Assembly: GCA_001938485.1 (NCBI GenBank)
Contig: MQRK01235862.1
Location: forward strand, 31,070-95,069
Reading direction: 5' to 3'
From: Girardia tigrina
Taxonomy: Eukaryota
Length of the DNA stretch: 64,000 nt
Below are positions 15,314-64,000 of the stretch, piece after piece. The first letter of the stretch is position 1, and every line of letters starts with the position of its first letter. A model generated the notes under the pieces. The model worked only from the letters and a program-made list of their open reading frames with translations. It was not told the DNA's origin and ran no database searches. Both the position numbers and the translations under genes were made by a program.

Positions 15314-16243
15314 ATGGTAGCAGCGCTAGCGGAATCAATCATGAACCGACTGATTCCCGGCATGTTCCAGATCGGAGAAGACCTAGAAAAATTTATTTCT
15401 CGCTGCAGATATTTTGAAGCAACCGAAATTAATCAAAGGAAATGGCAAAAATGTATTTACTCCATGATATATGAAGATCTTTTGGAAGCATATGAGAACG
15501 CAGCTGGTAAAGCTGATAATTTTGAGGATCGGTTAAGACTAGCGTTTGAGAAACCGAGAGCAACCGCGACGGACTGGGAAAAACTGTTGAGATATCGCAA
15601 AAGTGCTGATAACGCACAGACTTTTTTCAAAAAAGTAGACCGGCTGGTAAAAAATGCGTTGTCGCATAGACTCGAGGAAGAAGAGCTGAAAGCTCAAATG
15701 TTAATTCATTGCATTGATGATGAAGATGTTGTTCGTGAAATTAAATTACGGAAATTAAAGAGTTTCAAGGAAATATCTGAGTTCGTTGCACTCGTGGACG
15801 AAATAAACCACAAAAAGAAGAGCAGGATCAATGCTGTTCGAAGTTATCGAGATGTTGTTCAAAACAGCAGGGCTCCTGAGGTAAATAAAAAATGGGTAAA
15901 TCAGAGTCAGCCGAGAAAACCTCTCCTAAGAGAGGAATCAACCGAGTCCAAATGTTATACTTGTCATCAACCAGGACATTTCAGTCGATATTGCCAACAA
16001 AGAAGACCTGTGCAGTGTTGGAATTATAAAGAGACTGGGCGCATCAGTCGAAACTGTCCTAGCAGACAGCCATTGGTTTGTTTCTTGTGCGGGAAGAAGG
16101 AACATAAGCGAACTCAATGTCCAGAGATACGCTGTGAAAAATGTGGCCGGAATGAGCACCTAGCAGCGGCATGCTTAGTGAACTCTAGCAGACAGAATAA
16201 TGGTTACGACAATGGAAGATCGAGAAATTTATCGGAAATTTAA
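15314..16243 (+). CDS. gag: Gag with four CCHC zinc knuckles (C-terminus frameshifted)
   Basis: ORF 15260-16243: CYTCHQPGHFSRYC, CWNYKETGRISRNC (degenerate), CFLCGKKEHKRTQC, CEKCGRNEHLAAAC. Confidence 0.85.
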   Translation: MVAALAESIMNRLIPGMFQIGEDLEKFISRCRYFEATEINQRKWQKCIYSMIYEDLLEAYENAAGKADNFEDRLRLAFEKPRATATDWEKLLRYRKSADNAQTFFKKVDRLVKNALSHRLEEEELKAQMLIHCIDDEDVVREIKLRKLKSFKEISEFVALVDEINHKKKSRINAVRSYRDVVQNSRAPEVNKKWVNQSQPRKPLLREESTESKCYTCHQPGHFSRYCQQRRPVQCWNYKETGRISRNCPSRQPLVCFLCGKKEHKRTQCPEIRCEKCGRNEHLAAACLVNSSRQNNGYDNGRSRNLSEI

Positions 16244-17935
16244 AATCAACACAATAAATGAAGATGAAGAACGCACATTTGATGATAATGAAGAAAAAAA
16301 CGATAAGCCGTACCCAAACAACTGGGCTCCGCCAATTAGGGAGTTGGTAGGAGCCGAATGCCACTGATCGTAGAAGATAATTCCCACGGATTCGGATGCG
16401 ACTTGGATGTGCAAACGATGAATAAGGTCTATGGATTTGTGGAAAAGAATTTTGAGCAAGTATTCTATGTTAACGCGTTGATTGAGGATCAGAAATCAGA
16501 GATATGTTATAGTAAAATGCAGGGGCGTCCGAGCGTTACAGTGGATATTCAGGGGAAACAGTTGGAGTATTTGTTGGATACAGGAGCAGGTGTTAATGTT
16601 ATGAGTAAGAAGTATTATCAAAATTTGAATAATTTGGTGCGAGAAAAATGCGATATCAATTTGAGAGGTGCCAACGATGGAAAATTGAAAGTATTGGGTA
16701 AAATAGAGGTAGAAGTAGATATATGTCAGACAAGAAAAGCAGCACTATTTATTGTTGTGGAGAGTGTGGTTCCAGAACTGATAAGAGGCATAGTATTCAT
16801 GAAAATTTTCTGTTATTCCATACAAAGGAACGAATCTCAATACAATAATGTATGAAGGGAAGCACGTGGAAGTATGTGTAACATCGAGGCAAAATTCGGC
16901 AGGGTGATAAGGCCAGGAGAGACATTAAAAAGAGTGTTAGATTGCATAGGTAAAGTAGATTCAAAACTGTTAGAGATCATTCAGAATCAGGCAAAAGTAT
17001 TCATGGCTGATAAATGGGATATCGGATGTACCAGTTTAGCAAAACATCATATTAAGGCGAATGGAGAGCCAATTAAGTAAAAACTTTTTCGTCAACCAAT
17101 GCAACTCGAAGAAAAAATCATGGAGACTATAAAAAAATTGTATGATAATAATATCATTCGGAAGTGTAATTCACCTTGGAACACACCATTAATTTGTGTG
17201 TGGAAAAAAGAGGAGAAATATATTCGTATCTGTTTGGATTTTAAGCGCTTAACTGCAATAACGGAGAGACAAGCTTTTCCAATGCCCAATGTTGATGGGA
17301 TGTTGGGTAATTTAGGAGGTGCAAAGTATTTTAGCTCGATTGACCTTGGAAATGCATATTATCAGGTTGAGCTGGACGAAGAATCTCAGGAGAAACGACC
17401 TCTTCTACAAAGCAAGGACAGTATTGTTTTACTCGTATGTCGTTTGGTATAGTGACTGCGCCGGGAACTTTCCAAGAGATGATGACAAAAGTAGTCGGAG
17501 GAATCAAGGGTGCCACTGTATACTTAGATGATATCTTGGTATACACAAAAGATCGGGAGCAACACTTATTGTTTTGAATCAAGTTTTAGATAATATTAGG
17601 AAAACAGGATTGCGGGTGAACCCAGCAAAATGTCAATTGTTGAAGCGGGAAATTAAATTCCTTGGACATATAGTTAACGAAGACGATGTTGAAAAGGACC
17701 CGTCTAAGATTGAAGCAATAAGAACGTTTGGGAAGCCAAAGTGTGTTGGAAAACCCATCGGATGTTGGCACACGCGGGTGCAAGTAAAGTTGAGTATTAT
17801 TTAAGAGACTCTAAGGATTTTGACAATCTGAAAGGTAAGATCAAAGAAATTGTACGCAGTTGTGAATCATGTCAAAAGTATAAAACATATACGGCAAAAA
17901 CAAAAGAGAACACCGAGATTTTTTAATATATTTAA

Positions 17936-18664
17936 GTGGATATTTGTGGACCATTGAAGGAGACTTCTGGGAAAAAGAAATATATTCTAGGCATAACTGA
18001 TCAGTTCGATAAATACATTACGTTATTATCAATATCGAAACAAGATGAAGAGTCGATAATAAAAGGAATAATGCGGAATTGGATACTGAAATTTGGTTCT
18101 CCCAAGGCGATGAATGTGGATTGCGGTAAGGTTTTTGAATCAAAAAAGATGAAAGAGTTTGCAGAGAAACATAATTTTGAAATTAGATTCTCCAGCCCAT
18201 ATCATCATAACACAAACGGACAAATTGAACGTCGATTCCTTACCGTGAGAGAATTGATAAATGCAACATTGCATGAAAGAAGAAGTTCAGACTGGGCAGA
18301 GATTCTACCGGAGATCGAGTTTTCATTAAATGCCTCTTTACAGACGACTATCGAGATGAGTCCAGCTGAAATTATTTTCGGAAGACGCATTAGCAGGGAG
18401 AAATGGGATGGAAGAAATAGCAAGACATTCCAATATGAGCGGGACCAGGAGCCTATCACGCGAAGACAATTCTTCCCAGGAGATGATGTATTGGTAAAAG
18501 TAGAATCTAGAACAAAAGATCGAGGGAGATACGACGGGCCATATAAAGTCGTTCGAAGAGTACATGATAGAAGATATGTTCTTGAAGATATGTCTGGTAA
18601 AACATGTGAAAGAAATGTGGAGAAAATTAAAAAAAATCTTGCGTGCGGGGAGTGTCGTTGTTAA
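17936..18664 (+). CDS. Gypsy integrase core and GPY domain
   Basis: D(ICGP)...D(CG)...E(RRF) catalytic triad, YDGPY motif. Confidence 0.9.
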   Translation: MDICGPLKETSGKKKYILGITDQFDKYITLLSISKQDEESIIKGIMRNWILKFGSPKAMNVDCGKVFESKKMKEFAEKHNFEIRFSSPYHHNTNGQIERRFLTVRELINATLHERRSSDWAEILPEIEFSLNASLQTTIEMSPAEIIFGRRISREKWDGRNSKTFQYERDQEPITRRQFFPGDDVLVKVESRTKDRGRYDGPYKVVRRVHDRRYVLEDMSGKTCERNVEKIKKNLACGECRC

Positions 18665-42290: not shown

Positions 42291-43125
42291 ATATATAAAG
42301 ACGACAAGAGAATGGACTAAAATAATAAAAAGCGTTGAAAATTCTTTGAAGGGTGATGTAAAAAAAATATTCATTAAGCATTCTTAGAAATTATTTTTAA
42401 AAATTTGTTTAAACTATTTTATTTTTTGCATTCTTAATAAATTTTTGTAAATTATTTTACTTTTGATTTGAAATTTTAAAAAAATAAGTTCCTATAAATC
42501 GATCAATTTAACAATAAACTTTACATATTTTTACACATGAATTAATTTTTGAATGGTGCTTATTTCATGTTGTTTGATATATTGTTTATTGATTGTGTTA
42601 CTCCTACCCAGATGGAAGATTGATATTTTAAATATTTTAAAACGTCGGAATATTTAATCAATTTAAAAATGTTACTAGCAACCTTAAAATTAAATAAATA
42701 TATCATAGGTAATTTATTTAAAATATTTTTTTAAATAATTAAAATTATTTTGTATTTTAAATAGTAAATTAGTTCTAAATCGAATTGTAAATAAATTGTA
42801 ATTTAAATCTGTTGAATAATAAGACATTTAGAAATAGAATTAAATTTATCAATCACGAACGATAACTAGTTACAAAATTTTTGTCATAGTGGCAATTCAA
42901 ATTTTTATATCAATAAATGTATTGAAAATTAAATTATGGTTCGCAATAATATTTATTTTAAAAATATTATAATTTTCCAAGTCACTTTTACTTTTACCCT
43001 GTTATGTAATGCTTTGATATAAAATTTATATATAATTCAAAATATCTGATTAAGCAAAAACATAATTCGTTTTAATAAACATAAAACAATATAAAAAAAT
43101 TAACGTCATTTAAAAAATATTTTAG

Positions 43126-43164
43126 GATAATATATTTCGACGGTTTAACCGTCATCATCAGATC
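43126..43164 (-). ncRNA. Minimal hammerhead ribozyme motif
   Basis: Reverse complement of the motif at 46826-46864. Confidence 0.75.
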
Positions 43165-44769
43165 ACTGATTATGTTCTTTTTTTATTGCTTTTATATAAG
43201 AAATGAATGATTGTGTAATCACTTACGTTAGTCTAATCGAAAACTTTTAACAAATTAGTTGAGAGTGTTGTTTGAACATTGATTTTAGGATCACATGATC
43301 TTATCAACAATGCTTCACATGACACTCTCCTAATAATTTTTAAAATGCTTGAACAAAATCTTAAAATCATTTATGCTCATATTATATTTACACGTTTTTT
43401 TATGGTCAGCAATATTACTCTTTCTCCCTTTTTGAATGTGTTCTTGGACTCGTTTGCAGAGATGATGGGCAGTCTCTCCGATGTATGTGGCATTGCAACC
43501 ATTACATGTGTATTGATAAACAATGTCCGAACATAATCCTAAAGGAATATGTGATTTATTGCAAAACATATTCTCAACTTTTAACTTGCTCAATGTATCA
43601 ATACTTTTAATAGATTTTGAAAACGTGGAAGAAAGAGACTAAGGGTGGTATAACAAACCTTTGATCATATTCCTTTTATATTTAAACTCACAAAAACTGT
43701 TTATGGAGGTGTACAAACCAGTATCAGTTTTCTTTCGATATATTTCAGTTTCATAATGTTCATTTTTCCTTTCAATTAACAAATCAAGGAATGGTAATTT
43801 TCCGTTTATTTCCTGTTCTACTGTAAAGATTATTCGTTAGCACTTTTATTTAAAGCGTGTTTAAAATTAGTAAAATTAAAATTAATATTAAAAACCAAAC
43901 ATTACCTCTATTTTCGCCTTTGTTGGGACTAGTAAGTTTTTCCTTCGCGTCAGCCTCGGGCCTATTCATTGCACCGGCACCAAGGCAGACGATGGAAAAA
44001 CTCCCTAAATCTTAAAAAACAAAAAATAAAAAATATTATAATTTATAATTAATTAATTAAAAAATAGAAACTTTTAATTGGTTTTGACCCTTGGATCCTG
44101 TCGATTTGAATATTTTCTTATGATAATTTGATGGCCTGATTTGTTGACGTGGGTTTGATCGGGATTTTGGCCATCTCCAGGTTGTTTCTATGTGAGGACT
44201 GTTGACTTAGTGAAGGATGATTGAAGGTTGACTGTGAGAATTGTCTGCTTGCTGGTTCTGTGAGTTTTTGAGTCGAAAGATTGATATAAATTCATCCGAA
44301 TTTGTGCACTTGATCAGACTTTTTATTGAATAAATTTCATTAGTGAAAAAGGATTTTTGTTTTGAACTTAGGTAATTTTTGGATTTTATTTCCTTTTTTG
44401 AAGTTGATGGAGGTTGGGGAGCACCTCAAGGCTGCCGATCTGTCGATAGATAACGGTAGGGGCTTATAGTTCCTGCCAAGACTATTGACGATCAGGTAGA
44501 GAATATGAACAGGTTGCGAGGTAATTTGATGACTGCCGATCCGTTAATAGATTAACGACAGGTACTTATAGTGCCTGCCGAGACTATTGACGATCTGAAA
44601 GTTTGAGAAAGTCCTTGCCAAGTTTAATTTCTAGAAGAGAATTCGTTTCTCTCAACCTCCATCAATTATTCTTTCTGTTCTTTTTTTTATTTTATTTTTT
44701 GTAATCTACTCATCGTCCTTATTCAGCATGGATAGAAAATATAAAAGCAAATAACAACAAAGAGAACTG

Positions 44770-45192
44770 ATGCTGGAGTTGCAGATGTGGAAAGGCGAAT
44801 GTGACAAGCTGAATGACGAATTGACGAAGAGGACAACCGAATTTGAAGACTTCAAAAAGAATTCCGTTCCTCTATCAATTCACAAACCGGTTGTGGACAT
44901 ATATTTGCTAGGACAACAAAAAATAAAGTCCTTGCAAAACGAGGTCACCGAGATAAGAATTCAGCAAAATATGTCCAGCTACTACAAGAAGGTGATCGAA
45001 AATGTTTCAGAAGAGCAACCGGAAATAATTATAGAAACAGCAAACAAGATTGGATTAAATACAGAAAAGAAGCCTCTGGTGACGAACCCGAACATTTATG
45101 GGTCAAATATGAAAGAGGATATGGCATCATCTTCCTCTATGGTGCTCAGCCGATCCCAGAAGCGGCGGGAGCAGAGGAAGCGAAAGGCTTAA
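44770..45192 (+). CDS. Hypothetical coiled-coil/basic protein (140 aa) inside a 2.1-kb insert (43835-45965)
   Basis: Open frame with heptad-like charged segments and a basic C-terminus (RSQKRREQRKRK). No recognisable domain. Confidence 0.35.
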   Translation: MLELQMWKGECDKLNDELTKRTTEFEDFKKNSVPLSIHKPVVDIYLLGQQKIKSLQNEVTEIRIQQNMSSYYKKVIENVSEEQPEIIIETANKIGLNTEKKPLVTNPNIYGSNMKEDMASSSSMVLSRSQKRREQRKRKA

Positions 45193-46825
45193 ATGTTTCA
45201 ACAGGCCAAGAATGAGCTGCAAGCTGTTTTTAAAACCAGTCGTATTGAGGTTGACGTCCAAGATGGATAGATGGTAATCAGAAATGACACCAGTCAAAGA
45301 GAGTCTCCTGATTTTGATACCTCGCATAGAATTTCGCTGCTTTTTTAACAAATAATTTTCAAGAGACTATAGAATAACAAGAATGGCTGAACTTTAAGTC
45401 AAAACTTGAAATTCAGAAGGAGATTCGTGACCGCCTACAGTTCCGATCTATCACAACTGGTTAAGGTGAAGAGTTTGTCAATTTATTAGATTTGGATGAT
45501 TAGGGACGATGGGTGGATTGCCTTTGATTAGCATTTTCTTTTGTTATATTTTAATAAAAAATGTCAAAATATAATTTGTTCATATTCTTTAATCTCTGAT
45601 ATGAAAATGATAAACTCATAATAAGAAATATAGTAATCAAATAAAAAAACATGTTGAGAAAGAAATACGATAATCATTAACTAAATAGAAGTAGCATAAG
45701 CCAACTTTCATAGACTTAAGATATTTAAATATAATGAAGAACCCAATAGGTACTTCATCGACTTCACTGGCGAGATGAAAGGGCCAGATGAGGTTGATGG
45801 GGTACGATATGAATCTCTAATAAGTGTGAGTTAGAGACACTTACCGGAGAGACATATCTAAATAATATGTTGGGTCAAAATAAACTAAGATGCTAAAGCA
45901 TAATATGAAACACATAAATTTGAATTAATAAAATTAAAATAATAATATAAAATCCAGCACTAATAATATCACACTCAACACCTTAAACTTATTTTTATCA
46001 AATCTATTTTTAATAGAGTGTTTATGGTCATATTTTAATAATTTGAGTTCATCTTTAGACAAAACTGTCTGACTTAAATTTAAAACAGTATTTTCAACAT
46101 TAAATTTAAATACACCAAACCATTTCCTCAAGTTAAATAATTTTTTATTTTGTGCAGCAATTTTACTTTTATTGGTTTTTTTGGAGTTATTAATCGATAT
46201 AACAATACAAAAATGAAAACAAAAATCATCACTTACATTATGTAGTGCAAATCGAAAGAAAACTGATACTGGTTTTTACACCTCCATAAACAGTTTTTGT
46301 GAGTTTAAATATAAATAGAATATGATCAAAGGTTTGTTATACCGCTCTTAGTCTCTTTCTTCCACGTTTTCAAAATCTATTAAAAGTATTGATACATTGA
46401 GCAAGTTAAAAGTTGAGAATATATTTTGCAATAAATCACATACTCCTTTAGGATTATGTTCGGACATTGTTTATCAATACACATGTAATGGTTGCAATGC
46501 CACATACATCGGAGAGACTGCCCATCATCTCTGCAAACGAGTCCAAGAACACAGTCAAATAGGGGGAATGAGTAATATTGCTGAGCATAAAAAAACTTGT
46601 AAATGTAATATGAGCATAAATGATTTTAAGATTTTGTTCAAGCATTTTAAAAATTATTGGGAGAGAATGTCATGAGAAGCATTGTTGATAAGATAATTTG
46701 ATCTTAAAATCAATTTTCAAACAGCACTCTCAACTAATGTTAAGAGTTTTCGATTAGACTTACGTAAGTGATTGCATAATCATTCATTTCTTATATAAAA
46801 GCAATAAAAAAAGAACATAATCAGT

Positions 46826-46864
46826 GATCTGATGATGACGGTTAAACCGTCGAAATATATTATC
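46826..46864 (+). ncRNA. Minimal hammerhead ribozyme motif
   Basis: GAT-CTGATGA-T-GACGGT(TAA)ACCGTC-GAAA-TATA-TT-ATC. Confidence 0.75.
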
Positions 46865-47599
46865 CTAAAATATATTTTTAAATGGCGTTTATTTGTTTAT
46901 AATAAAAAATTGCCATCTTTTTTCAAGTTTATTTGTAATAAAACAATACAACATTATTTATTCGTTTAAAAAAATATTTAAATTTATTTTTCTTGTCATT
47001 TCTATTCTTAGCAAATGATATTTAGAATGAAGTAATATAAAAACTGCTTTTCTTTATACACAAAGTTTTCTATTCATTTATAAAACTGTTCATTTTAAAC
47101 TATTCATTTATTAATACAACATTTTTAATCTGAAAGGAAATCTTATTAGAAATAATGAAATAATAACTTGTGTCTTTGATACTTAAAACTGCGGCTTTTA
47201 AGAAGTATTTGAAATAATAAATTTTTGTTAAAGACTTTGACGGCTTAAAAATTTTCTTGACGTGAGTAGAACTGACCTGCAGTTTTAAAGCAAGTGCAAG
47301 ATTTCAAACTAAAAAAACCATTGCATTGTTAAGACTAACTCGACGTTGACTAATTCAAGTGTACAATTGGTTAAATCAAAGGATCTAAAAAGCTTCGTGC
47401 GACAAACGTTTGGAATCTAAATTAAATATTATATGACTTATAAGGCCATTGAAAAAAAGGAACATTGAGAAAAAATGGGTTTTACTTAATTCTTACTTGT
47501 ATTTCAGCGTACTAGTTTTGCAACCTTGCATGACATTGATTGTTAACATTATATACAAATCGAAAATGGTACATTTTAAAGGATTTTTCACTGGGCCAG

Positions 47600-47810: not shown

Positions 47811-50800
47811 CAGATTGTCCTTTAAAAAATGTCGTTTTTACAAATCCAGATAATATAGAAATAACTTTGCACCAATGTAATTCAAAAATAAAATTTCACA
47901 AAATTACCATAATGCTGAATGACCAGCTGGCAGTGGTGTTTCAGTTTATCAAACTCATGTCTCAAGATCTAAATACTCATAATCTCCTTGGAATCTTCCA
48001 GGAGGTCTCCAAGGAATGAGAATCAACGAAAACGTTATTTGTGCGACGCATTTCCTGGAGAGGGAATATGAGGTAGTAGCAAATTTTAGTGTCAGGAGAG
48101 TATGTAGGTTGGTTAAGACGATGGCAACGTTTCGTCTCAGGGAAGGTGGTAGTTGCCCTGAATACATAGGCTGGCGCATTTTCATGAATCATCATCGTAT
48201 TTTCCCATCGGGCGGCTTTTCTTGTTGACAGCCCAAAGACCCATCCACTTCTTCGCCATGGGCATTTGCCTGATTATTTGAGGAACATCACCGTCCGGGG
48301 GAATCAAAGCTTTCCTAGAAGCTGCTTTCCCAATTCCACACGCATAAAATTCCTTCTCAACAGTAAAGACAAGGTTTTTCTGCATGTTTCCTTTGTCCAT
48401 CACCTCCACAATTTTCTGGTAGGATTTCCCCCCGCGTTCTTTGTGCACATCAGTCAGATTGTGTGGGATCCACTTGCAGTGAACATTGCGAAATCCAAGG
48501 TCGTTGGGAATGATGATTATAATCACCTGTCTTTTAGAATATTTTAGCATTTCCAATGCCAAATGTAGAAGAAATGCTAAATACATTAAATGGAGCAAAA
48601 TACTTCAGCACAGTCGATTTGGGGAGTGAATATTATCAAGTTGAATTGGAAAACGATTCAAAAATAAAAACTGCATTTTCGACAAAGAACGGCCAATAAT
48701 GTTTTAAAAGAATGCCATTCGGAATTGCAGCTGCCTCATTGACATTTCAAGAAACTAATGACAAGAGTGTGAGGAGAATTAAACTGGAAAGAAGCAGTTG
48801 TATACCTGGACCATATTCTAATCTTCGCAAAAGACAAAGAAGAACATTTCAGACGAATCGAACACATATTTCAAAAGATTAAAGAATCGGGCCTTCGGAT
48901 AAACCCTGAAAAGTGTCAATTCATGGTAGAAAAGACAAAATGTTTAGGATATGTCGTGAGCAAAGATGGTATAGAGACGGATAAAACGAAAATTGAAGCA
49001 ATTTCAAAATTTCAAAATCCTTCATGCATTAAACATTTAAGAAGTTTCTTGGGGCTAACGAACTATTATAGAAAATTTTTGAAGGATTATGCAAAATAAT
49101 CAAAAATACTGGAAGGGCTATATGGAAAAAATAAAGATAAAAAATTGACATGGATAAAGGAATGTGACGAAGCATTTCAGACATTAAAAGATAAAATGAC
49201 AAAAACACCGATCCTAGCATATCCAGATTTCGAAAAGTAGTTTATACTGGATACAGACGCCAGTTTTGATACAATCGGGGCATTACTTGCACAGAAGGAT
49301 GCATATGAAAGGGAAAGAGTAATTGCCTATGGATCCCATAAGATGAACAAACACGAAATGTGATACTGTATTACAAGAAAAGAATTATTGGCAAACTAGT
49401 ACTTTACCCAAAACTTCAAACATTTCTTATACGGAAAGAAGTTTCTACTTAGAACGGACTATAAGGCTATCACATTCATGATAACAACGAAGAACCCAAT
49501 AACTCCACAATTCAAAACTTGGATAAACTTCCTTAGTGGACTTGACATGAGGATGGAATACCGCAAGGGCAAAAAACACACCAATGCAGACGCAATGTCG
49601 AGAAATATATGTGGACCATGTGTACAATGTCAAACAAGGCACAATGACGCTAAAAAAGGAAAAGTTTAAACTAGAGTCCTAGCATTTACCGAAGATTCAG
49701 AAGAGTTCATTTGGCAGACGAATGATGAAGAAATATAACAGATTAAAGAAAATATTAAAATTGGAAAGACAAAAGAATGGCTACTGAAAATCAATATCAT
49801 GACGACAAGAGATAACAAATATTGGATCCCTATGAAGAAGAGAAAAGACTTTATAGAAGATATACATAAAATGTTATGATTGCCTAAGTAAGAAAGTATG
49901 CAATTACATAAAAGATGATTTCGATATGTTTGAAATAGGACACCAGATAAAGAAAATCATACAAAGTTGCGAAAACTGCCAGAAAAGGAAGACGCTGACG
50001 GCAAAAACGAAAGAGAAACACATTAAACAATCTGCCGAAGAACCATTTCAAAAAATTTACATGGACTTTTGCGGACCATTCAGAAGGACTATGAATGGAT
50101 ACCAATACATTTTAGCAATAATCGATCAATTTAGTAGGTACATCAGCTTGACCGCAGTTGCACACCAAGACGAGAAGACTACACGAAAGGTACTATTAGA
50201 GAAATGCACTTGGAAATTCGGACAACCAAAAGAGATACACGTTCATAGAGGGAAAACTTTCGAATCAGCACTCTTTAAAGAAACGACGAAGAAATTTAAG
50301 ACAGAGATAGTCCACTCAAGCCCTTATCACTATAACACTAAAGGGATCATAAAAAGACAATTCAGAACAATAAGAGATGCCATAAATATACTATTAAAGG
50401 ATGAAATGCATAATAGACACAATAATAGACATTCGAGAGTCAGCCAATAATTCAGCCTTCACTTCTTCAACTAATTGGTGTCTTTTCTCGGTTTTTGGAC
50501 GACCACTTTCTTCAGTGCGATCCAATGATGTTCTAGGGCCATCTTCAAACTCTTTCACTATTCTTTGAACTTGTCGAAGTCCGATTATATTTTCCCCCGA
50601 TGCCGTTGTAAGACGTTCGTGTGTTTTGCTTCACTGCATTCCATTTCTGCGACAGATTTCAATCACAACGTTTAGCTGTTCAGCAGACGGTTACCGCATT
50701 CTGTACTGTAAATACGTGAAAAATAATTGTATTAAAATTAATTAAACTCAAAAAATTTATACAATACTTATAGAAATAAGTTACATAATACAGAATTATA

Positions 50801-51122: not shown

Positions 51123-51965
51123 CGAGGGGTGTCACAAAAGTTCACGGACTGATAAGTAACAACAAATTCAAAAAGTTTATTCTAGTTAACAAAACTGATC
51201 AATCCTCATCAGACTCGCTATCGAACTTTTCAATATAATCACCATTCAGTTTCACACACTTTTCTCATCTCTGTGTCAACTTTCTAATACAATTATCGAA
51301 GAAAATAAGCGGGGACTCCGCAAACCACGCACTGACTGCTGTTTTCATTTCATCTAAATTCGCGAAATGATGCCCTCAAAGTGGTTTCTTCAATGCCGAG
51401 AAAAGGTGATAATCACTCAGCGTGAGGTCCGGTGAATATGGGGGGTGAGGAAAAAGGGTCCAGCCCAATCGTTGCATGGTACTGACAGTCAACTTCGCTG
51501 TTTGGGGACATGTGTTGTCCTGTTGCAATAATGGGATGGATGACAACTTTCCCCGCCGTTTGTTCTTGAGAGCTTTGCGTAGATCTTTATCGAGCAGGTT
51601 CGTGTAGTATGCGCTATTGATGGTGACCCCCTTTGGCAGGTTCTCAATGTTAATTATCCAATTACAGTCCAAAAAGACTGTAACCATTACATTCCCGGCT
51701 GAAGGGACGATCTTCGCCTTTAAAGGGGGTCTGTCAACTGGACGGCACCATTGACGGGACTGCTCCTTGGTTTCAGGAAGATTAAACGGGAGCCACATTT
51801 CGTCTGCTGTCATAATCTGTGACCAGACGCCTCACCGAGATCATGAACCAGTTGCAGCAGTTCTTGACAGACAGACTTTCGATTAACCTTCTGGTCGTTG
51901 TTGAGGAGGCGCGGTACCCACCTGGCAGTCAGTTTCCTCATATGCAGCTCCTCTGGCATGATGCC
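51123..51965 (-). mobile_element. Mariner (DD34D) 3' half with TIR
   Basis: 'RWVPRLL', 'TADEMW', 'LQQDN', 'HPPYSPDLTLSDYHLF'. TA-CGAGGGG terminus. Confidence 0.9.
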
Positions 51966-54900
51966 AAAGTAAAGGCCATTTGAATCTTTATCTGGAACCA
52001 ATCTATTGGCAAGTTGTGCGATCCCGCTGCGGTACCAATCCTTGTTCTTAGAAGCGAAGAAGTGGTGATACCCGTTTTCGACCTCGGCCAGATTATTGAA
52101 GCTGCGACCACGGAGAAAGTGTGCCATAGAGCGAAAAAGGTGATAGTCGAATGGTGCAAGATCCGAACTATACGCTGGGTGTGGAAGATTAATCAATTAT
52201 TTCTCGCTTTCAATGGCGTCGAGATTTTTGATTTTTTTCCTTTGTTTGCTTGGTGGTGTGCGGTTTTGCATTGTCCTGTTGTAGAAGAACTCGCTTTCCA
52301 TTGATTAAAGCGGAGTATTTCTCGCCAAGTGCCGCATCCATTCGATCAAGTTGGGCGCAGTAAAGGTCAGCGTCGATGGTGCGACCATTTGGAACCATCT
52401 CGAAGTGAATCACGCCTTCGAAATTCCACCAAACACACAAAAGTGCCTTCCTTGAGAAACAATCTCGTTTCGCTACCGGTTTCGCCATTTGTCCGGCGTC
52501 CAACCATTGATTTTGTTGGTCTGGATTACTGAAGTAAACCCACTTTTCATCGCAAGTTACAATTCGACGGATGAAACGGTCATCGCGCGGATTTTCAAGC
52601 AATTTTTGACAAGTTTCGAAACGCTTTTCGGTTTGAATTTGTGTCAATTCATGAGGCACTTCTCGACATCATGTCACGACCCTTCTGAGCACAAACATTT
52701 TTGAAAGCTCTTGAGCCCCCAGTGGCTATTAAGGATCAGCCACAACCCTACGTCTATTTTGATATTCACTTGTATCTACCTATATAATGGGTCGGACGTT
52801 TCTTCTCGCTCGACATCTGCCTGGCAGTGCCGAGTTTGAAGGACCTTCCGGTTCTGATAAAGATGGGATGAGCTATGGGCCCCCAACCTACAGAGTGTCG
52901 CTCGGGGATGATCTATCTATATTTTTCAGAAGTATTGCGTTCGAATTTCTCTTTGTATTTTAAACTTGTCGCACCGTCATGTGTACTAGACTTGTGGCAC
53001 GGTAATATGTTAGTCATGCTAGACTTGTGGCACTATTATGTGCTTGTACGTTTATGCTCTGTGGAACTTGTGGCAATGTGGAATTAGCTTAACCTACAGC
53101 ATATCGACAATCACTTGTCCCCTTATTAGTTTTATATTGTTACGCCGCCTATGATTATTTATCGAGATTTTTATCTATGTTGTAAAGCTTATATTGGTAT
53201 CGTTAATTCATATCCGCTACAAACTCATCTTATAACGCAACATTAGCCATGAACTTCCAGTTTAAAACAAGAAACTAGGGAAATTAATAACTCAATCGCA
53301 TTACCTCGAATAGGTAAACTCTTAATAGTCGATTTTAATTCAATTATATCTAAGTATTCACAAAATCCATATCAGATTAAAATTAAAGACCAATAAGTTT
53401 TCCCAAAAGAAATCTTAATAAAGTTTTCAGTAAAATTATCGATAACATTTTTGACGAAATTTCCAACAAAATTTCTAGCAAGATTCGTCTTATCACCAGA
53501 ACGAAATATGGACAATTTCGATTCAAATCAAATTGTCATCAACTTAATTTATTAATTTACTCGCAAAAATTTATTAATTACTAGTTATAACTCGTTATAA
53601 TTTACGTGTTAGATTAAACCTTAATCAAATCAAATCGCTTTTAAAATCATTATAGAAATTGTCAAAATTATCAAAATAAATAGAAATTGTCATGTAATTT
53701 AAGTCGAGCAATTCCAATTCTGAAATCCTTTAAAGTTTTCATGAATGAATAATAAACGGATAAACGTAAAATCATCAAATGTAAACTATCAAATGTCTCT
53801 TAAATACCATTAAAATCATTTAGCACCAAAAAATAGAAATTAAAAATTAAAATTATATTTGTTTTAGTATATCAATTATATCTAAAGGTCACGTCAAGGG
53901 TTCGAACTTCTGGAAGACCGAGACTCCCCTAACCGGTCGTCAGATCGTTCGGCCAATATGAACCGGGGACTCTATCCCGGCAAGAATCGACTCAACGGGA
54001 TCGATTTGGTTAAACGTATCGAGGGAGATCGACATTACGTCGACGATCATCGGGACCACGTGGTCCCCATCTCTCTTTAACAGCTCAGGTGATTGGGAAT
54101 CCAGTTGGGGCATTTACGGCGAAAGTTGACGGCGGCGACGACGGGCGTTCGTTACTTTTTAATACGGGAAGGTAATTTATTCCTGTAGTGGTTCAATTAA
54201 CAATAATAGTGGTTAAATAAAAATTCATAGATAAAAACATAAGTCGTATATAAAAATTCAAATTATAATTTAAACCGAAATTTACATTTATAACAGGATT
54301 TTCTTATTATGGCAAAGCGGATTCGGAGGAATGCTCGTCGGTTTCTCTTCGAATATTGTCGTGTAGAGATGGTTCTCTTATTGCTTGATCGCGTCGGTAT
54401 CGGGTGATCGTCCTGGCGTCGAATGTTACCAAGTTCTCGTCTCTTCGTTACGGATGTTTCGCTCGTCGGTTCAATTACCTATCAGTCGCTCTGATCTCAA
54501 TTGATTTCTTCGAAGCCTTGCGAATGTAAGTGCGTTCCATTCGTGAAAATCGTTGTCTTTAGAATTGCTTTTGAAATTGTTTTGTTATTTTATGGACGCA
54601 TGTTCTAAGAATGTTTGTCACATTTATAGGGCTGGTGAGACACCCTGTTAATCCTCGTGGACCAATCGACTTCTGCCAGGCAAGTGTCTGGACTTTTCTC
54701 GTGAGCTGATTCGTCGATTCGGGTAAGTGTGTTTCGATAAAAATTTTTAAAATTTGAAATTTTTATTTTATTATAGGAATCGATGTCGGTGTGTCGTGGC
54801 ACATCTGCAAATTCTAGAATCCGTGTGCGGCTGTGTCACCGATAACTCGGTTAAAATTTTCGGCGATGTCTATTATTATACTGGCCGTTGAGTCATGGTA

Positions 54901-57293: not shown

Positions 57294-57736
57294 TTAATCG
57301 ATATTGATATAATCATCCCCGCGCGATTCTCGGCTAGTTGGAAAGCACATAGTCTTTTCCCAACTAAATTGAACCTGAAGATGCTCCAGACCTGGTACTA
57401 CTCGTTCGATGTCAGGCGAGGGAGGCACATCCGACCACCTAGTAAAGTGAATATGTGAAAATAATTGCGGGACATATCTGATCGTGGTTGACACTTAACA
57501 ACCACTAGGGGCACATGAGCTTTCAAAAATGTTATTGCTCGAAGGGGTTTTGACAAAATTCTCTCCATTTTCATGCGATAGTAGAATTCTTCAACAACTA
57601 ACTTCTGTTGATCTTTCTGAGGCTCCTCATGAAAAACCTGTTTTACTACCTCACATTTTTACATCTTTGTCACCCTGTGCACTATCGTAAATAACTTCCT
57701 CATCAAGGTCAAATTGACCTTAATCACAATTCAAAA
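57294..57736 (-). pseudogene. Accessory ORF remnant running across a PPT into the start of an LTR related to 52672-55459
   Basis: 57555-57294 aligns with 52672-52930 (ACATTTTTGAAAGCTC...AGTGG..TTAAG; GTCGGA; GGGGATGAT). Purine tract GAAAATGGAGAGAA lies just upstream. Confidence 0.6.
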
Positions 57737-58267: not shown

Positions 58268-58770
58268 TGTCACGTCCTTCGTACTTTTTTATGATTCTCG
58301 TTTCGCTCTAGTGTTCAATTTTTTACTCTCTCTTTAGTTACGATAATCGACACCTTTTATAAGCTTGACTTGAATAAATTATCTCCGCGTGAGGTGTCGA
58401 ATGAATAATTTAATACTTGAAATATAATTCTGATCTTCTCTTAATCTTGTACTTGTTAATTACTTTGACCTTGAACTTTCAAAATATTTTGTCGTACTTT
58501 TTGTGCGCTTTTCTTCTTTTTCTTCTACCTTTTATATTACTTTCCTTGATATATAATTCTTCTTATTTATCTTATTTACAGTTCTGTTTATCCTTTTAAT
58601 ATAAATACCTTATTTTCAAATTCTGAATATTTATGTCTAAAATTCAATTAAATCTAATTATTTTTATATAATTTATATTTATTATAGTAAAGAGGTAAAT
58701 AATCTTTTATTATACCTATTTAATTAAAATAAATATTAATTGTTAAAATTTATATTTTATATACCTAACA
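58268..58770 (-). repeat. Putative 3' LTR of the exonuclease-carrying element
   Basis: TGTTAGG...CGTGACA on the minus strand, TATAAAAGG followed by GAGAGAGT, and an upstream GGGGAC...ATTTT motif typical of gypsy 3' ends. Confidence 0.65.
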
Positions 58771-58926
58771 ATTCGTCGGGGGGCGATAAAATTTATGTCC
58801 CCATAAATAAAACAATCAAAAGTACTATACATATGAAAGAATTTGAGATATACATAAATCAAGATAAGAAAAGATAGGATACACAAGATAAAAATGAAAA
58901 TCAATCAAATCAATAAAATGTTATTG

Positions 58927-61290
58927 TTAATCATCATCCTCAGTTAGATCAATCGGAAGTTCATTGAAGGGATCGTTCTGAAAACTCGGTTCCATCTTCA
59001 CAGGATATGGATGCGGCGAGTACCATGGTTGATCCGTGTTCCGCGGAGTCACTCGAAAACCCTCATCGATGTCTACCTTTTGGAGGAGAGGCGGGGTAGA
59101 ACGAAGACCGCCTGATTGGCCTCGGTACCAACGATTGTACCTAATGATATCTTCGTCGTTCCGAAAGAAGCGGTTTCCTTTAACGACAGGTGCCGGTTGA
59201 TCGCTGATGTAAGGGGGAGTGACGAGTCGTTGCTGGGTACATATAAGACTTTCGGAAGGGTTAACAATCGTACAGGAAGAAAAAGCGACGTGAGAAGGTG
59301 AGAAAACCTTTGCAACCTTCTCCGGATGACGACCTAATGTCCCCTTTGACCAACGCTTAGCTTTAATGATTATGGTCCTAGGTTCTTCAAGGGTATTCTC
59401 CAATATTTTAGGGGCGAGCCTCTCAGAAATCGGAGTTCGCGTGCCGGACAGAACCCTTAACTGGTCTGGATGAGGCGGTGGAGGCATTTCCTCCAAGGTA
59501 GGTATATAAACGGGACATGCATCCGGATCCATTGGTGGTAACTCGTATTCGAAATAATTCAAAGGAGCAAAAAGGTCCAATACATCAGCCTGTGGGGTAT
59601 CAACCTCCTCTCTGGCAGAATGAAAGGATGTTACCGAAGATATGTCAGAAAGTGCCTTAGACATCCTCCAATAATTGGCATCCAACCATTCTTCCGCCGT
59701 GGAAGAAGGTGGTCCGTGAGTTTGTGGAGGTGAGTTCTCAAATAAATTTGAGGCATGGGTAGGGGATAAATCATCCATCCACCTACTTTCTACTTTCCGA
59801 TAAATTCTACGTAGGGCGTCTGTATCCTCATGGGAATTATGGACATGGATCTGAATTTGTTCCTTAAGGATATCCCATGCCAAAGCCTTTAAGCCAAAAA
59901 AACTACCATTATTTTTTGGTTTGAGACCCATCAAGTGAAAAACTTTAGCCTTGGTGGTATCGCGAATTCCTAACAGAGTGTGAGTGGGTATGGCCAATCT
60001 TCTGATCTCCATTTGGATATCATGACCTACAAGTATGTTGCCATATAAATGTCGGTGTAGCTCTGCAATTACCTCATATTCATCCGCAGAACCTATGAGG
60101 CTGCCATCTTCCAACCCATGACACTCGGTGGCCCAATCAGTTATTCTAGTACGGAACCTAACTCGAGTGTTCATCAATAATTTTCCGTTGAAATTCATGA
60201 GCGTAATTGCCGCTACATGAAACCTCTTATCTGCATCTTTTACAAATTCCGCGTCAAGAAATCTCAAGCGAAGCCTAATGTCCTGTAAGGAGAGGTTTTT
60301 TCTAATAAAAGATGACCTTTGGGCGACCAGATTTTCGCTAACTTGAAAGTCCGAATTAATCTGAATATGCGAGAGCTGGTACCACGGGTTTGGCACATCA
60401 TCCTGGAGCAAAAACTCTACGGCTAGGACAGATATTTCTTTAGGGGAGGATATGTAGATGTCATTTATCTGTTCTGCCACATCGTCTTCCAGGTTCTCAG
60501 CGATGTCAATTGCAATAGAATGCAATTTCGGGACATTTACCAATACCTTAGTGTCGCTGACAATGAGAGGGGCAGAAGCAGCGTGGATACACAAGGTAAT
60601 TATTCTGTAATGTGGATTATTAAATGTTGTGGGTATACTGTGCCTGTATAATCCCATTATATCGGAAACCTTCCATCTTCGTGTCACGGTAGTCTTTATT
60701 ACTACCATTTTTTTGTTTAGGTCATTATAAATCAGCCGGTTTTGGTAAAATCTAGGTGAAGGATACACTGCTACAAACAATTTCTCCATGATCCTAGTCA
60801 AACCGGACTGGACGTCACGATAGAAGGTGTTGCCATAATGCATAGATCGTATGGCTAAACCGAACAATTTTGTGGACTGGGCCGAGATAGGCTCGTTGGG
60901 TGTCCAACTAGAAGGTAAAGGAATCTCAATGGGACAGATGGGCTGTTTCAAGAAAGCGCGTATGAGTCTATCCTTACATTCCTCTCTGCGCGTAAGTATG
61001 TCGAGGTGAGGTTTCTCTTTATTGATTCGAGTATCCCTAACAACAACTGGTAACTCCTCACAATGGCGATCAACCAGTTCCTTACGATTTCGATATTGGG
61101 AAAAAGAAAGATTATAGTCATAAGACAGCTCATTTTGATCGAATGTTTGATGAAAGTCATTATATTTTTGATTCATTTTGGTAAGAAACAGTTGAGAGGA
61201 TTGGGAAACTGGATGCATCTGCAAAATAGAAAACATTAACTTATTGTGCACATTTGCACGAATTAGAAAAGAAAAGAAAAAATTCAACAC
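58927..61290 (-). CDS. Accessory protein with a REX4/ISG20-like DEDDh 3'-5' exonuclease domain (probable ATG at 61218)
   Basis: 787 uninterrupted codons. ExoI 'FLDAEFV', 'ITDWATECHGL', ExoII 'ILVGHDIQME', 'IRDT', 'GLKALAWDILKEQIQ', ExoIII 'HNSHEDTDALRRIY'. Confidence 0.85.
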   Translation of the reverse strand: MLNFFFSFLIRANVHNKLMFSILQMHPVSQSSQLFLTKMNQKYNDFHQTFDQNELSYDYNLSFSQYRNRKELVDRHCEELPVVVRDTRINKEKPHLDILTRREECKDRLIRAFLKQPICPIEIPLPSSWTPNEPISAQSTKLFGLAIRSMHYGNTFYRDVQSGLTRIMEKLFVAVYPSPRFYQNRLIYNDLNKKMVVIKTTVTRRWKVSDIMGLYRHSIPTTFNNPHYRIITLCIHAASAPLIVSDTKVLVNVPKLHSIAIDIAENLEDDVAEQINDIYISSPKEISVLAVEFLLQDDVPNPWYQLSHIQINSDFQVSENLVAQRSSFIRKNLSLQDIRLRLRFLDAEFVKDADKRFHVAAITLMNFNGKLLMNTRVRFRTRITDWATECHGLEDGSLIGSADEYEVIAELHRHLYGNILVGHDIQMEIRRLAIPTHTLLGIRDTTKAKVFHLMGLKPKNNGSFFGLKALAWDILKEQIQIHVHNSHEDTDALRRIYRKVESRWMDDLSPTHASNLFENSPPQTHGPPSSTAEEWLDANYWRMSKALSDISSVTSFHSAREEVDTPQADVLDLFAPLNYFEYELPPMDPDACPVYIPTLEEMPPPPHPDQLRVLSGTRTPISERLAPKILENTLEEPRTIIIKAKRWSKGTLGRHPEKVAKVFSPSHVAFSSCTIVNPSESLICTQQRLVTPPYISDQPAPVVKGNRFFRNDEDIIRYNRWYRGQSGGLRSTPPLLQKVDIDEGFRVTPRNTDQPWYSPHPYPVKMEPSFQNDPFNELPIDLTEDDD

Positions 61291-61340
61291 AATTATAGCG
61301 AAATATATAATTGCAAGGCTCGTACAGCCAAAAATGATTT

Positions 61341-62539
61341 TTATACCTGTGTTTCCTCTACGTACACTCCTGGCAGGTATTTCTCCAAGGAGGTACGATA
61401 TAAGTTTAAAGCCGTTTGTTTCTTTTTATATTTTCTATACAAGAATAATATGTGCCACATTATTAAAGAACTGAGCGAAAACAGTCCTAAGCTGAACAAT
61501 ATGAATGGCCATATGTGTAATTGTAAGTTTTTGTGAAATATTGTATGATCATTTGTTCTATAAAAGATAGATTGAATTTTTGTTAAAGAATCGGAGTCAA
61601 TAAATTTCTCATGTGTTTTTACTTGTGGTAAGGTAAATAGTGAACTATATTGTACAAAAATATCCCATGAAAGACAGTGAACTGTGAGGTTTGATTCTGG
61701 ATTATCTATTAATGTTTTCTGTCGTGACCATTTTATTTCGAACGCTGCTGTTAAAGCTATTTCTCTGTAGATAAGAACATACATATTTGTATGATTCTGG
61801 TATCCGTCAAAATATATTGCGCTAAGTTCATTATTATTTTGCCAATAACATTGTCCTAGACAAATCTTGAAGGAATATTTATTGTTACAAGCTCCGATAT
61901 TAACAAGGACGGTATGTGGGACAATTTGTATTTGAATTTGTCGTTCTTTTAATATCGTTTTCGATGTTGCACTTACGCCTCGTAAAATAAAAGAGAGAAT
62001 AATCAATATGATTAATCTCCAATATTTAGGGTTAAACATTTGATTCCTATTTATCTGCTCTTTCTTTTTCTTTTCCGTGATCATGGTATTTCCGTTTCCC
62101 TCATCATTTATTGTTAATCTCTTTTGATGCTGATTATGTAATTTCAGACTTAATATTTCATCTTTTCCTTTTTGTGTATTTAGTTGTCTAATTCGATCTA
62201 AATCTTGGTGCCTTACGTATGAAACAACGGCCTTCTTTCCATCTCGTGATATAATATCATTATTTTCGATTATCTCAAAGACTGATTTTACTAATTCTGA
62301 ACCGTATTTCTTACTATATTCGGATGCGGTGTTTCCATGCTGATCCAAAAGCATCAAATTTGAATATATAATAAGTGGTGCTACAACTGTATGAAAGGGT
62401 GCTCGATGTATTATTGCTTCCATTAACGCAGTTAATCCATCATTTCCTTGAGTATCTATTAATCCTGGATACTCACATAACTTTATCTGTTTAAGTAACT
62501 TTGCAGCTTTGTGAAATTTATGTCGAATTATAACAATTA
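61341..62539 (-). CDS. Ankyrin repeats, internal signal sequence, Cys-containing ectodomain and C-terminal TM (env-position ORF); 5' end broken by a Helitron
   Basis: 'GNDGLTALMEAI', 'DQHGNTASEYS', 'KYWRLIILIILSFILRGVSA', 'IWPFILFSLGLFSLSSLIMWHILFLYRKYKKK'. Confidence 0.75.
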
Positions 62540-62866
62540 CTAGTAAATAACCCGTCATGTATGACGGGTAAAATTGAGAAAAGAAATTTCATTTTTTAAT
62601 TTTAATTTGAGTAATTTTGGATGTGGAACAGATGCATTAAAACAAAGAAGACNNNNNNNNNNNNNNNNNNNNNNNNNNNNNNNNNNNNNNNNNNNNNNNN
62701 NNNNNNNNNNNNNNNNNNNNNNNNNNNNNNNNNNNNNNNNNNNNNNNNNNNNNNNNNNNNNNNNNNNNNNNNNNNNNNNNNNNNNNNNNNNNNNNNNNNN
62801 NNNNNNNNNNNNNTTATTAATATAAATATCTACTTACAATTGTAAGTAGATAATATGAGCGTTAGT

Positions 62867-62905
<39 letters not shown>

Positions 62906-62929
62906 TGAGTGACTTGGGCTTTTATAAGA
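62540..62929 (-). mobile_element. Non-autonomous Helitron
   Basis: 5' TC(TTATAAAAGCCCAAGTCACTCAC) with (TGCC)n, 3' hairpin CCCGTCAT-AC-ATGACGGG then CTAG. Inserted between A and T. Spans an N gap. Confidence 0.8.
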
Positions 62930-63043: not shown

Positions 63044-63321
63044 TTATCCAATATCTTCCTGTAACACTAAAATAGTTTCATCTTCTTTACTTTGCTTTTG
63101 TGATAGTTGTATTTTATGATCAATTTTTCTATCTTTTGATACTGGTAGATTAATTTCTATTACTGCTATTTCATCTGATTGAGTTTGTGATCGGAGATTA
63201 TATCTTTTAACTGGCTCATTTTCCGCCTTTTTACATCTATTTATGTGTACAACTATTGGATCAGTGTTCTTGTTTTTTATTATAAATAGATTTGTGGGTG
63301 TCACTTTGACAACCTCATAAG
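63044..63321 (-). pseudogene. Gypsy integrase C-terminus (GPY/F-type)
   Basis: 'YEVVKVTPTNLFI...PIVVHINRCKK...RYNLRS'. Confidence 0.75.
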
Positions 63322-64000
63322 TATTACGGAAACGGACTAGTGGGGCAAAGATTACTACTAACCCGCCTACGCAATCTTATAATAGACCAAATAAAAAAAG
63401 TATATACACAACTGTCGAAAATATAATTATATATATAAACAATTATCAACAGATGACAGCCAGGAAAAGAAAGGAGTCGTTTGATCACAAAAGAATTATG
63501 TCGATAACACTAGCGAAAGCCAAAACAGATTTGTCACAAAAAACAAACAAAATGTTTACTTCAAACTGAGGCTTCGACAAACGCTCTTGGACTGAGATAT
63601 CGATATTCGGCTAAGGTGCCAAAAATGTCGTAGCTCGATTGTCTGTTCCGTTCGATTAGATTGACGACTGTCTTTGTTCTTCTCGAAAATTAGGATTCTT
63701 CTATTAATTGCCCTTGATCGGTGGTTATGATTTGTCAGATGTATAGTCCTGTCTCCGGATTCTTAAAATAGTCCACTGGATTAAGGAAACCAGTCGACGG
63801 CGATTTTGAACCGGAATTTTATTATTCGGCGACTTTTACCGATGTCCTAACGATGGATCAGTAATTATAGAGATCACGATATCGTTAAGATTATTTTGAA
63901 TTTTGATTTAATTTTTTTTAATTGTTCGATCAATCGTTTTTATTGATCATTTTTAATTTTCATATTAATTTTATTATTGTCATTGGCAATATTCCAATGA
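63322..64000. repeat. Probable LTR-type insertion interrupting the integrase
   Basis: The integrase frame is lost abruptly at TATTACGG (...CCGTAATA on minus, like the TG...TA LTR ends). The sequence is non-coding and CpG-rich. Confidence 0.4.

Follow-up and report, generated by a model that had tools for sequence, protein, structure and literature searches.

Extra genes are rare in long terminal repeat (LTR) retroelements and are mostly of unknown function. The closest biological precedent for the gene described here is ORF3 of bdelloid rotifers, an open reading frame (ORF) for a DEDDy exonuclease that is carried by LTR elements (Juno, Vesta) and by Athena/Terminon elements (PMC5408684). The function of ORF3 is unknown, a change from DEDD to DEED has been reported in it, and coiled-coil and transmembrane ORFs accompany it (PMC5408684). 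Cer1, a gypsy element of C. elegans, provides a precedent for an extra 3' ORF, whose product, CERV, is expressed through a spliced mRNA (PMC10309623). In gB-type errantivirus-like gypsy elements, recently described from Nematoda, Bryozoa and Platyhelminthes, the order is GAG-ENV-POL (PMC13524379). The word exonuclease does not occur in the text of that report, and therefore the 3' gene is not described there. Our literature searches turned up no account of gypsy or errantivirus elements with a REXO4/ISG20-type exonuclease or with a double-stranded beta-helix (DSBH) domain. Here we describe a gene that is predicted to encode both, in a stretch of 64,000 nucleotides from Girardia tigrina (assembly GCA_001938485.1, contig MQRK01235862.1, positions 31,070 to 95,069 of the forward strand; hereafter the window). 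We suggest, with a probability of roughly 80%, that this gene is an accessory gene at the 3' end of an LTR retroelement of the Ty3/gypsy, errantivirus-like kind. The copy in the window would retain the 3' part of the element: the end of the integrase, a membrane-protein ORF, the exonuclease ORF, a hairpin, a block resembling a polypurine tract and the start of an LTR.

The exonuclease ORF occupies 58927..61290 on the minus strand of the window and is 787 amino acids (aa) long if counted from a GTG. In the homologous proteins P0001 and P0002, the first residue is the Met found at position 25 of the 787-aa ORF. The coding sequence is therefore likely 58927-61218, specifying 763 aa with a helical N-terminus, a DSBH domain, a DEEDh exonuclease and a Pro-rich tail. 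An earlier note, made from the letters of this DNA, had called the ORF intronless and intact, the longest of the window, more G+C-rich than its flanks and Pro-rich at its C-terminus. Each of these descriptions held. The 763 aa are encoded in a single frame, and the runners-up in the 64-kb window have 405 and 327 aa. The G+C content of the ORF is 0.435, compared to 0.299 for the window, 0.315 for the adjacent ORF and 0.23-0.31 for the flanks. Pro makes up 13.4% of the C-terminal 268 aa and 4.2% of the remainder. An exact look-up of the protein returned no record.

We found that the ORF probably encodes a conserved 3'-5' exonuclease whose catalytic pentad is intact and which is predicted to be active. 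The DEDDh (here DEEDh) domain (aa ~305-495; 59734..60306, minus strand) was assigned from motifs, profile, fold and tree, and it includes the interval 59795-60270 that had been singled out earlier. The three motifs reported there, D-x-E (DAEF), GH-x4-E (GHDIQME) and H-x4-D (HNSHED), are all present and align to ISG20L2. ExoI, D-A-E-F, lies at 60255-60244 (D at 60255-60253, E at 60249-60247). The E of ExoII, at 60009-60007 in G-H-D-I-Q-M-E, aligned to the ExoII Asp of ISG20L2 and ISG20. The Asp-to-Glu change at this position is real, and the carboxylate is retained. ExoIII, H-N-S-H-E-D, lies at 59841-59824 (H at 59841-59839, D at 59826-59824) and has the H-x4-D spacing of the 'h' subtype.

Sequence and fold comparisons pointed to the same assignment. 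The match to Pfam RNase_T, which falls just short of the curated threshold, spans model positions 3-163 of 164, and the relatives P0002 and P0007 have precomputed RNase_T matches with E <= 1e-5. When the window protein was compared to the PDB using phmmer, it matched ISG20L2 (E 6e-7) and ISG20 (E 2.3e-4). An AlphaFold model of residues 1-500 had a mean predicted local distance difference test score (pLDDT) of 81 and a predicted template modeling (TM) score (pTM) of 0.73. Foldseek matched the exonuclease part of the model to ISG20 (1wlj) with E 8.5e-10, a target TM of 0.83 and a root-mean-square deviation of 2.0 Å. It also matched ISG20L2, Pan2 and the epsilon subunit, which have the RNase H-like exonuclease fold. 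The assignment to DEDDh is weak by sequence and consistent across the profile, PDB and fold matches. The proposal of a DEDDh nuclease of the REXO4/ISG20 branch was supported by the motifs, the PDB matches and the similarity to the fold of ISG20.

The window protein belongs to a family that is mostly unnamed in the matches we sampled. An exhaustive phmmer search of 1.84 billion representatives with the window protein gave 758 matches at E <= 1e-3 and 58 at E <= 1e-10. The closest homologues, P0001 and P0002, are full-length proteins from metagenome contigs, with 64% and 63% identity over 97% coverage. The top matches were 350-680 aa long and came from metagenome and SRA assemblies; those sampled had no meaningful name, and one was labelled only "hypothetical protein". 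Family members have in common an N-terminal domain of ~150 aa, in which I-P-N recurs and one His is near-invariant, then a linker whose last residues are F-I-D-A-E-F, the exonuclease and a variable acidic tail. A profile-based search (close alignment) for related loci in metagenome and viral contigs found nothing.

We found that the family forms a clade of its own. A tree of 158 exonuclease domains, sampled from the matches to the window query and rooted at the midpoint only, split 59 members including the window protein (representatives at 50% identity) from 99 REXO4-like sequences, with a support of 100 in the Shimodaira-Hasegawa-like approximate likelihood ratio test (SH-aLRT). The window ORF is therefore not nested in REXO4. 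Those REXO4-like sequences that carry a name are RNA exonuclease 4 and come from flatworms, a nematode, a fungus and an alga. The pentad is DEDHD in 98 of these 99 sequences, and the last row is cut before ExoI; as had been stated earlier, REX4-like proteins carry Asp at ExoII. In the window clade there were 29 DEEHD pentads, 17 DEDHD, 3 cut or partly gapped rows and 10 dead sequences, and the D-x-E of ExoI was kept in 48 of the 59 members. The Glu of ExoII is therefore a trait of the clade that alternates with Asp, not a change of the window copy alone. The same distribution argues against random decay of the active site. Such decay in other copies, which the earlier note had named as a possible outcome, was not seen, but one monophyletic subclade of 10 representatives (P0021, P0025, P0027, P0034, P0036, P0046, P0048, P0059, P0060 and P0112) has lost all five catalytic residues. 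The proteins of this subclade retain long ORFs and the N-terminal domain, and they look like retroelement-borne pseudo-nucleases.

The exonuclease family is physically linked to gag-env-pol in relatives of the window gene. At two related loci, L009 and L010, a Gag with a CCHC motif is followed by a polyprotein of 3003 or 3108 aa and then, 230-360 nt beyond, by the exonuclease ORF. The polyproteins contain the fusion glycoprotein PF24664 (E 5e-80 and 1.5e-83), a protease, RVT_1, RT_RNaseH, Integrase_H2C2 and rve. At locus L011, reverse transcriptase (RT), RNase H (RH) and integrase (IN) are followed by the exonuclease ORF. At L003, the order is exonuclease ORF, ~2 kb of non-coding DNA and Gag (Retrotrans_gag and two zinc knuckles), which is the expected result when an assembler merges two LTRs into one. 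In the tree, L003, L009, L010 and L011 represent the basal groups with Asp as well as both subclades with Glu. No LTR pair was found at these four loci within the stretches examined.

The same loci have some additional features. The polyproteins of L009 (L009:628-9639) and L010 (L010:443-9769) are single ORFs with the fusion glycoprotein in frame upstream of the protease (PR), RT, RNase H and integrase. After the integrase there is an unassigned extension of ~450 aa with a hydrophobic segment. At L003:228-1194, two coiled-coil ORFs (158 and 120 aa) replace the membrane-protein ORF that precedes the exonuclease gene in the window.

Membership of the window copy in such an element is suggested by an integrase remnant on one side and a block of 3' cis-acting sequences on the other. 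The remnant, the C-terminal domain of integrase at the end of pol (63161..63349, minus strand), was identified by tblastn with the pol of L009, L010 and L011. It is 51% identical over 59 aa to residues 2508-2566 of L009 pol (E 3e-9), and its frame is open down to a stop at 63044. Upstream of ~63355 (63355-64000), tblastn found no credible pol homology, and a different repeat lies at 63885-63960, beyond the end of that homology. The copy is therefore either 5'-truncated or interrupted, with the rest beyond the window. The interval that separates pol from the 405-aa ORF holds a (CCTG)n microsatellite (~62870-62915) and an assembly gap (N run 62653-62812).

On its 3' side, the exonuclease gene is followed by a putative hairpin (58791..58808, minus strand), whose stem has 6 bp and whose loop is G-G-G-G-A-C, just upstream of the polypurine-tract-like block. 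A hairpin with a loop of the type G-(G/A)-G-G-A-C is found at the same place in L001, L002, L003, L005/L006, L007, L008, L010 and L011. These elements are very divergent, and the stems differ between loci. When the 7 loci whose loop has 6 nt were compared, both partners had changed in 5 of the 6 base pairs, and pairing was kept in 100% of cells; these figures come from sites located by searching for complementarity. The hairpin lies at L001:2610-2627, L003:2998-3015, L008:1688-1705 and L011:6974-6991, and L003 has a second, similar one ~290 nt before gag (4659-4678). We know of no described counterpart of a conserved hairpin upstream of the tract, and a search with a 27-base hairpin pattern gave no matches. 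A T-rich spacer separates the hairpin from the block at the polypurine-tract position (58771..58785, minus strand), which is C-rich in the window lineage and purine-rich in others. The first part of the presumed 3' LTR (58665..58770, minus strand) opens with T-G-T-T-A-G-G at 58770, followed by TATA-like and AATAAA-like motifs. The sequence TGTT(A/G)(A/G)G after the tract is conserved in 8 loci, with a one-base displacement in L001. Similarity to L001 extends to 58665, the end of the L001 contig.

As judged from codon comparisons, the exonuclease gene is under strong purifying selection along its full length. Among the window gene, L001 and L002, the proportion of synonymous differences (pS) was 0.78-0.92 and that of nonsynonymous differences (pN) 0.09-0.24. 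Saturated pS and low pN were seen alike in the N-terminal part, the exonuclease and the tail; in the Pro-rich tail, pN was 0.26 and pS 0.79. The gene is therefore old and has been constrained over its whole length. The suggestion that the gene is under selection was borne out. The suggestion that it is a recent retro-captured REXO4/ISG20/AEN-like gene is contradicted by the tree, the saturated synonymous sites and the gag/pol context.

Several observations weigh against an accessory gene of a retroelement that encodes an active exonuclease. The RNase_T match of the window protein scores 22.1 bits (E 2.4e-4), just below the 24-bit gathering score. The exonuclease ORF is present as a single copy in the 64-kb window, and we found no further copies of it or of the 405-aa ORF elsewhere in the window. 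The window copy has no demonstrable LTR pair, primer-binding site or intact gag-pol. The subclade of 10 dead proteins points to some role of the protein that does not need catalysis. Finally, conservative Asp/Glu exchanges in Klenow polymerase cut exonuclease activity by >96%, as cited in PMC7654266.

Some of these observations would also fit a host gene, either a retro-copied REXO4/ISG20-like gene or an element gene (perhaps together with the membrane-protein ORF) that was domesticated while the rest of the element decayed. In the window, pol is down to a remnant of 60-100 codons, yet ORFs of 405 and 763 codons are intact. The single copy, the strong purifying selection and a G+C content unlike that of neighbouring element parts could be read in the same way. 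However, the signal of selection was obtained by comparing lineages of the element and not orthologous host loci, and the raised G+C content is common to element-borne homologues (at L010, 0.456 for the ORF and 0.378 for its locus). The integrase remnant is free of stops for ~100 codons, so that we may be dealing with no more than a young copy into which something else later inserted, and the downstream retroelement cis block is intact. A young interrupted copy thus accounts for the same facts as domestication. A host retrogene of REXO4 is excluded because of the tree and the saturated divergence. Overall, we consider a host gene unlikely. If the gene belongs to a retroelement, as we favor, it illustrates a trap for annotation: an ORF that is long, intact, G+C-rich and "host-like" may itself belong to a transposon, even where the transposon genes around it are broken.

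The Klenow measurements bear on a second alternative, that the Glu of ExoII cripples catalysis and that the domain only binds RNA, like Maelstrom or EXD1. The sister subclade that lacks the whole pentad and still has long ORFs would fit this idea. But in 29 representatives the Glu is accompanied by four other intact catalytic residues, and Glu and Asp alternate within the clade while the other residues are kept. In addition, coronavirus nsp14 is naturally DEEDh and active, and the E191D change in MERS-CoV is viable and active (PMC7654266), which indicates that Glu at ExoII is compatible with activity. A pseudo-nuclease in the window is therefore improbable in our view, and we favor an active enzyme.

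We also considered an endogenised gene of a non-retroviral virus, such as an arenavirus-like nucleoprotein or a giant-virus exonuclease. This idea came from the layout of an N-terminal domain followed by DEDDh and from ~2.7-kb contigs with a single ORF; ~330 aa followed by DEDDh superficially resembles the arenavirus nucleoprotein, and giant-virus exonucleases were the best matches in the viral structure library. However, no arenavirus protein was found among the sequence, PDB or viral fold matches, and no relative turned up when viral contigs were scanned. The N-terminal part has the predicted fold of a DSBH and not that of a domain like the cap-binding one of the nucleoprotein, and the genomic context is that of a retroelement. 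The candidates of an arenavirus-like nucleoprotein and of an endogenous RNA-virus gene were ruled out by the fold searches and the gag/pol context, and a non-retroviral origin of any kind seems to us extremely improbable.

The retroelement gene that we favor is preceded by the 405-aa ORF (61341..62558, minus strand), which is predicted to encode a small membrane protein. Two segments are hydrophobic (aa 179-200 and 347-373), a short loop that could be glycosylated contains 2 N-x-S/T sites and 4 Cys, and the cytoplasmic tail, which ends in T-Q-V, is conserved. C-termini homologous to it precede the exonuclease ORF in L001, L002 and L004, and the protein P0172 is a homologue with 45% identity. 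A Pfam scan of the 405-aa ORF found no family, and we found no homology to the C-terminal extension of L009 or L011 pol. Ankyrin repeats had been suspected by eye; none were found in Pfam, and a marginal PDB match to MIB1 (E 0.075) was all that spoke for them. The T-Q-V terminus resembles a PDZ-binding motif of class I.

The end of the 405-aa ORF is unusually conserved at the nucleotide level. In its last 14 sense codons (61341-61385) there were no synonymous differences among the window, L001 and L002 and one in L004, which is much more distant (compared stretches L001:1-46, L002:79-124 and L004:390-435). Given the saturation elsewhere, a nucleotide-level signal probably overlaps the end of this ORF.

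A conserved spacer of 122 nt (61219..61340, minus strand), identified from alignments, separates the two ORFs. Its last nucleotides, a pyrimidine-rich tract and a CAG immediately 5' of the ATG, resemble a splice acceptor, and a YAG is found 0-3 nt 5' of the exonuclease ATG in 8 of 11 loci. We considered that the 405-aa and exonuclease ORFs might be spliced into one gene via the conserved C-A-G/G-T-A-T-A-A. This is not favoured, because a stop follows the conserved T-Q-V and the second ORF begins with Met in every homologue. In 61219-61366 (minus strand), RNAalifold pairs 8 nt close to the stop of the 405-aa ORF with a stretch ~30 nt before the exonuclease ATG. That stretch is also a local palindrome, and its halves co-change between the window and L001/L002. 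The evidence for the pairing, from three sequences, is weak; a role in splicing or shunting or as a binding site is possible.

The N-terminal region of the exonuclease protein, ~330 aa that the earlier note had left unrecognised, indeed has no family at the level of sequence, but its fold could be recognised as a helical region followed by a DSBH. The helical region (aa 6-90; 60949..61203, minus strand), possibly a coiled coil, was predicted from AlphaFold (pLDDT 45-71) and the alignment, and it is restricted to the closest relatives. The DSBH domain, which is cupin- or 2-oxoglutarate (2OG)-oxygenase-like (aa ~115-275; 60394..60876, minus strand), was predicted by AlphaFold, with a pLDDT of ~90 in the strands, and by Foldseek. 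Its Foldseek matches (entries 5c5t, 3rzl, 4j25 and 8ag3; E ~2e-4, TM 0.37-0.50) include PBCV-1 and bacterial prolyl hydroxylases, human ABH2, N-terminal domains of vaccinia C16 and cupins. In 38 sequences of the domain, the HxD/E...H iron triad was not found; one His is near-invariant, without an acid at +2 and without a second conserved His. Sequence-profile searches of the PDB, Pfam and the protein collection with this domain found only its own family and no free-standing relatives. Based on the predicted fold and the missing triad, we infer that the DSBH domain is a non-catalytic binding module.

The Pro-rich tail (58930..59733, minus strand) was recognized by its composition and conservation, and short motifs within it are conserved. 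At its end, a hydrophobic core, I-D-L-T, precedes a run of acidic residues, an arrangement that we take to resemble a SUMO-interaction motif. The tail might direct localisation or the binding of partners.

The features of the window copy suggest how the gene might be expressed and what its product might do. The protein would be translated from a spliced subgenomic mRNA, using the acceptor-like CAG before the ATG. A spliced subgenomic mRNA is the mode of expression of retroviral env. The product is predicted to be a Mg2+-dependent 3'-5' exonuclease that acts on RNA, and we consider three candidate roles. It could remove the RNA strand of the RNA:DNA hybrids of reverse transcription, alongside the RNase H of the element. 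It could trim the 3' ends of the RNA of the element or of the primer. Or it could destroy host small or double-stranded RNAs that would silence the element, as viral DEDDh enzymes do. REXO4 is reported to degrade the RNA strand of R-loops together with RNase H1 (PMC12915616), which gives a lead for the role on hybrids.

In its widest form, the proposal is of a whole lineage of large invertebrate gypsy-type endogenous retroviruses with a DEEDh exonuclease of its own, linked in one protein to a degenerate domain of the oxygenase type. The exonuclease would serve as a partner of RT/RNase H or as a suppressor of small-RNA silencing. We regard this as tentative and rather doubtful. Joined to it, and just as tentative, is the notion that the enzyme is a convergent counterpart, in a retroelement, of nidovirus ExoN or of the exonuclease of the arenavirus nucleoprotein. 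If the enzyme is a partner of RT, it could remove hybrid RNA, or it could provide proofreading that permits polyproteins of ~3000 aa.

The window contains other mobile DNA. Three decayed gypsy-type copies, with pieces of gag, protease, RT-RNase H and integrase, lie at 5278-7375 (minus strand), 15260-18664 (plus strand) and 48547-50450 (plus strand). They are 23-50% identical to L009-L011 pol, and no trace of an exonuclease gene was found in them. At 51810-52659 (minus strand), two frames together hold what remains of a mariner-type transposase. Positions 52672-52743 and 57484-57555 form an inverted repeat of 72 nt. Inverted repeats of 415 and 144 nt (96% complementarity), at 43109-43739 and 46251-46881, surround ~2.5 kb. 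The structure at 43109-46881 may be a young terminal-inverted-repeat or foldback element.

Compared to known systems, the window exonuclease is nearest to cellular RNA exonuclease 4 among named proteins. It has the fold of REXO4, ISG20 and ISG20L2, the layout of ExoI-III and the His of the 'h' subtype. Unlike REXO4 and ISG20, it belongs to a separate clade, has Glu at ExoII, is combined with a DSBH domain and a long Pro-rich tail, and is borne by a retroelement. The DSBH domain has a fold like that of the 2OG-Fe(II) oxygenases (prolyl 4-hydroxylase, AlkB/ABH2) and of the vaccinia C16 N-terminal domains, but it differs from the oxygenases in the missing triad, in the modest TM values and in the lack of a sequence-profile match.

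The gene also differs from other extra genes of retroelements. The bdelloid ORF3 is RNase D-like with a Tyr, whereas the window protein is REXO4/ISG20-like with a His; no DSBH domain has been reported for ORF3, and the host and element lineages differ (PMC5408684). CERV is set apart by its description, having been reported without homologues outside nematodes and without a nuclease domain (PMC10309623). The errantivirus-like gypsy elements (PMC13524379) are matched by L009 and L010 in the order Gag, fusion glycoprotein and PR-RT-RH-IN; the window copy differs from them in that no env or gag is in view.

Virus-encoded exonucleases of the DEDDh type are found in nidovirus nsp14 and in the arenavirus nucleoprotein. 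We found no specific relationship between them and the window protein in sequence or fold, and they belong to RNA-virus replicons and to other domain contexts. Proofreading and the removal of immune-stimulating RNA by nsp14, which also has Glu at motif II and is active, suggest candidate functions for the window protein. The same Asp-to-Glu variant occurs in coronavirus ExoN and, as reported, in the exonuclease ORFs of rotifer retroelements. The gene described here is a two-domain enzyme gene that is conserved across a deep retroelement clade under strong purifying selection. It raises the question of what a reverse-transcribing element gains from a 3'-5' exonuclease of its own, in replication, fidelity or counter-defence, and of why catalytically dead versions persist.

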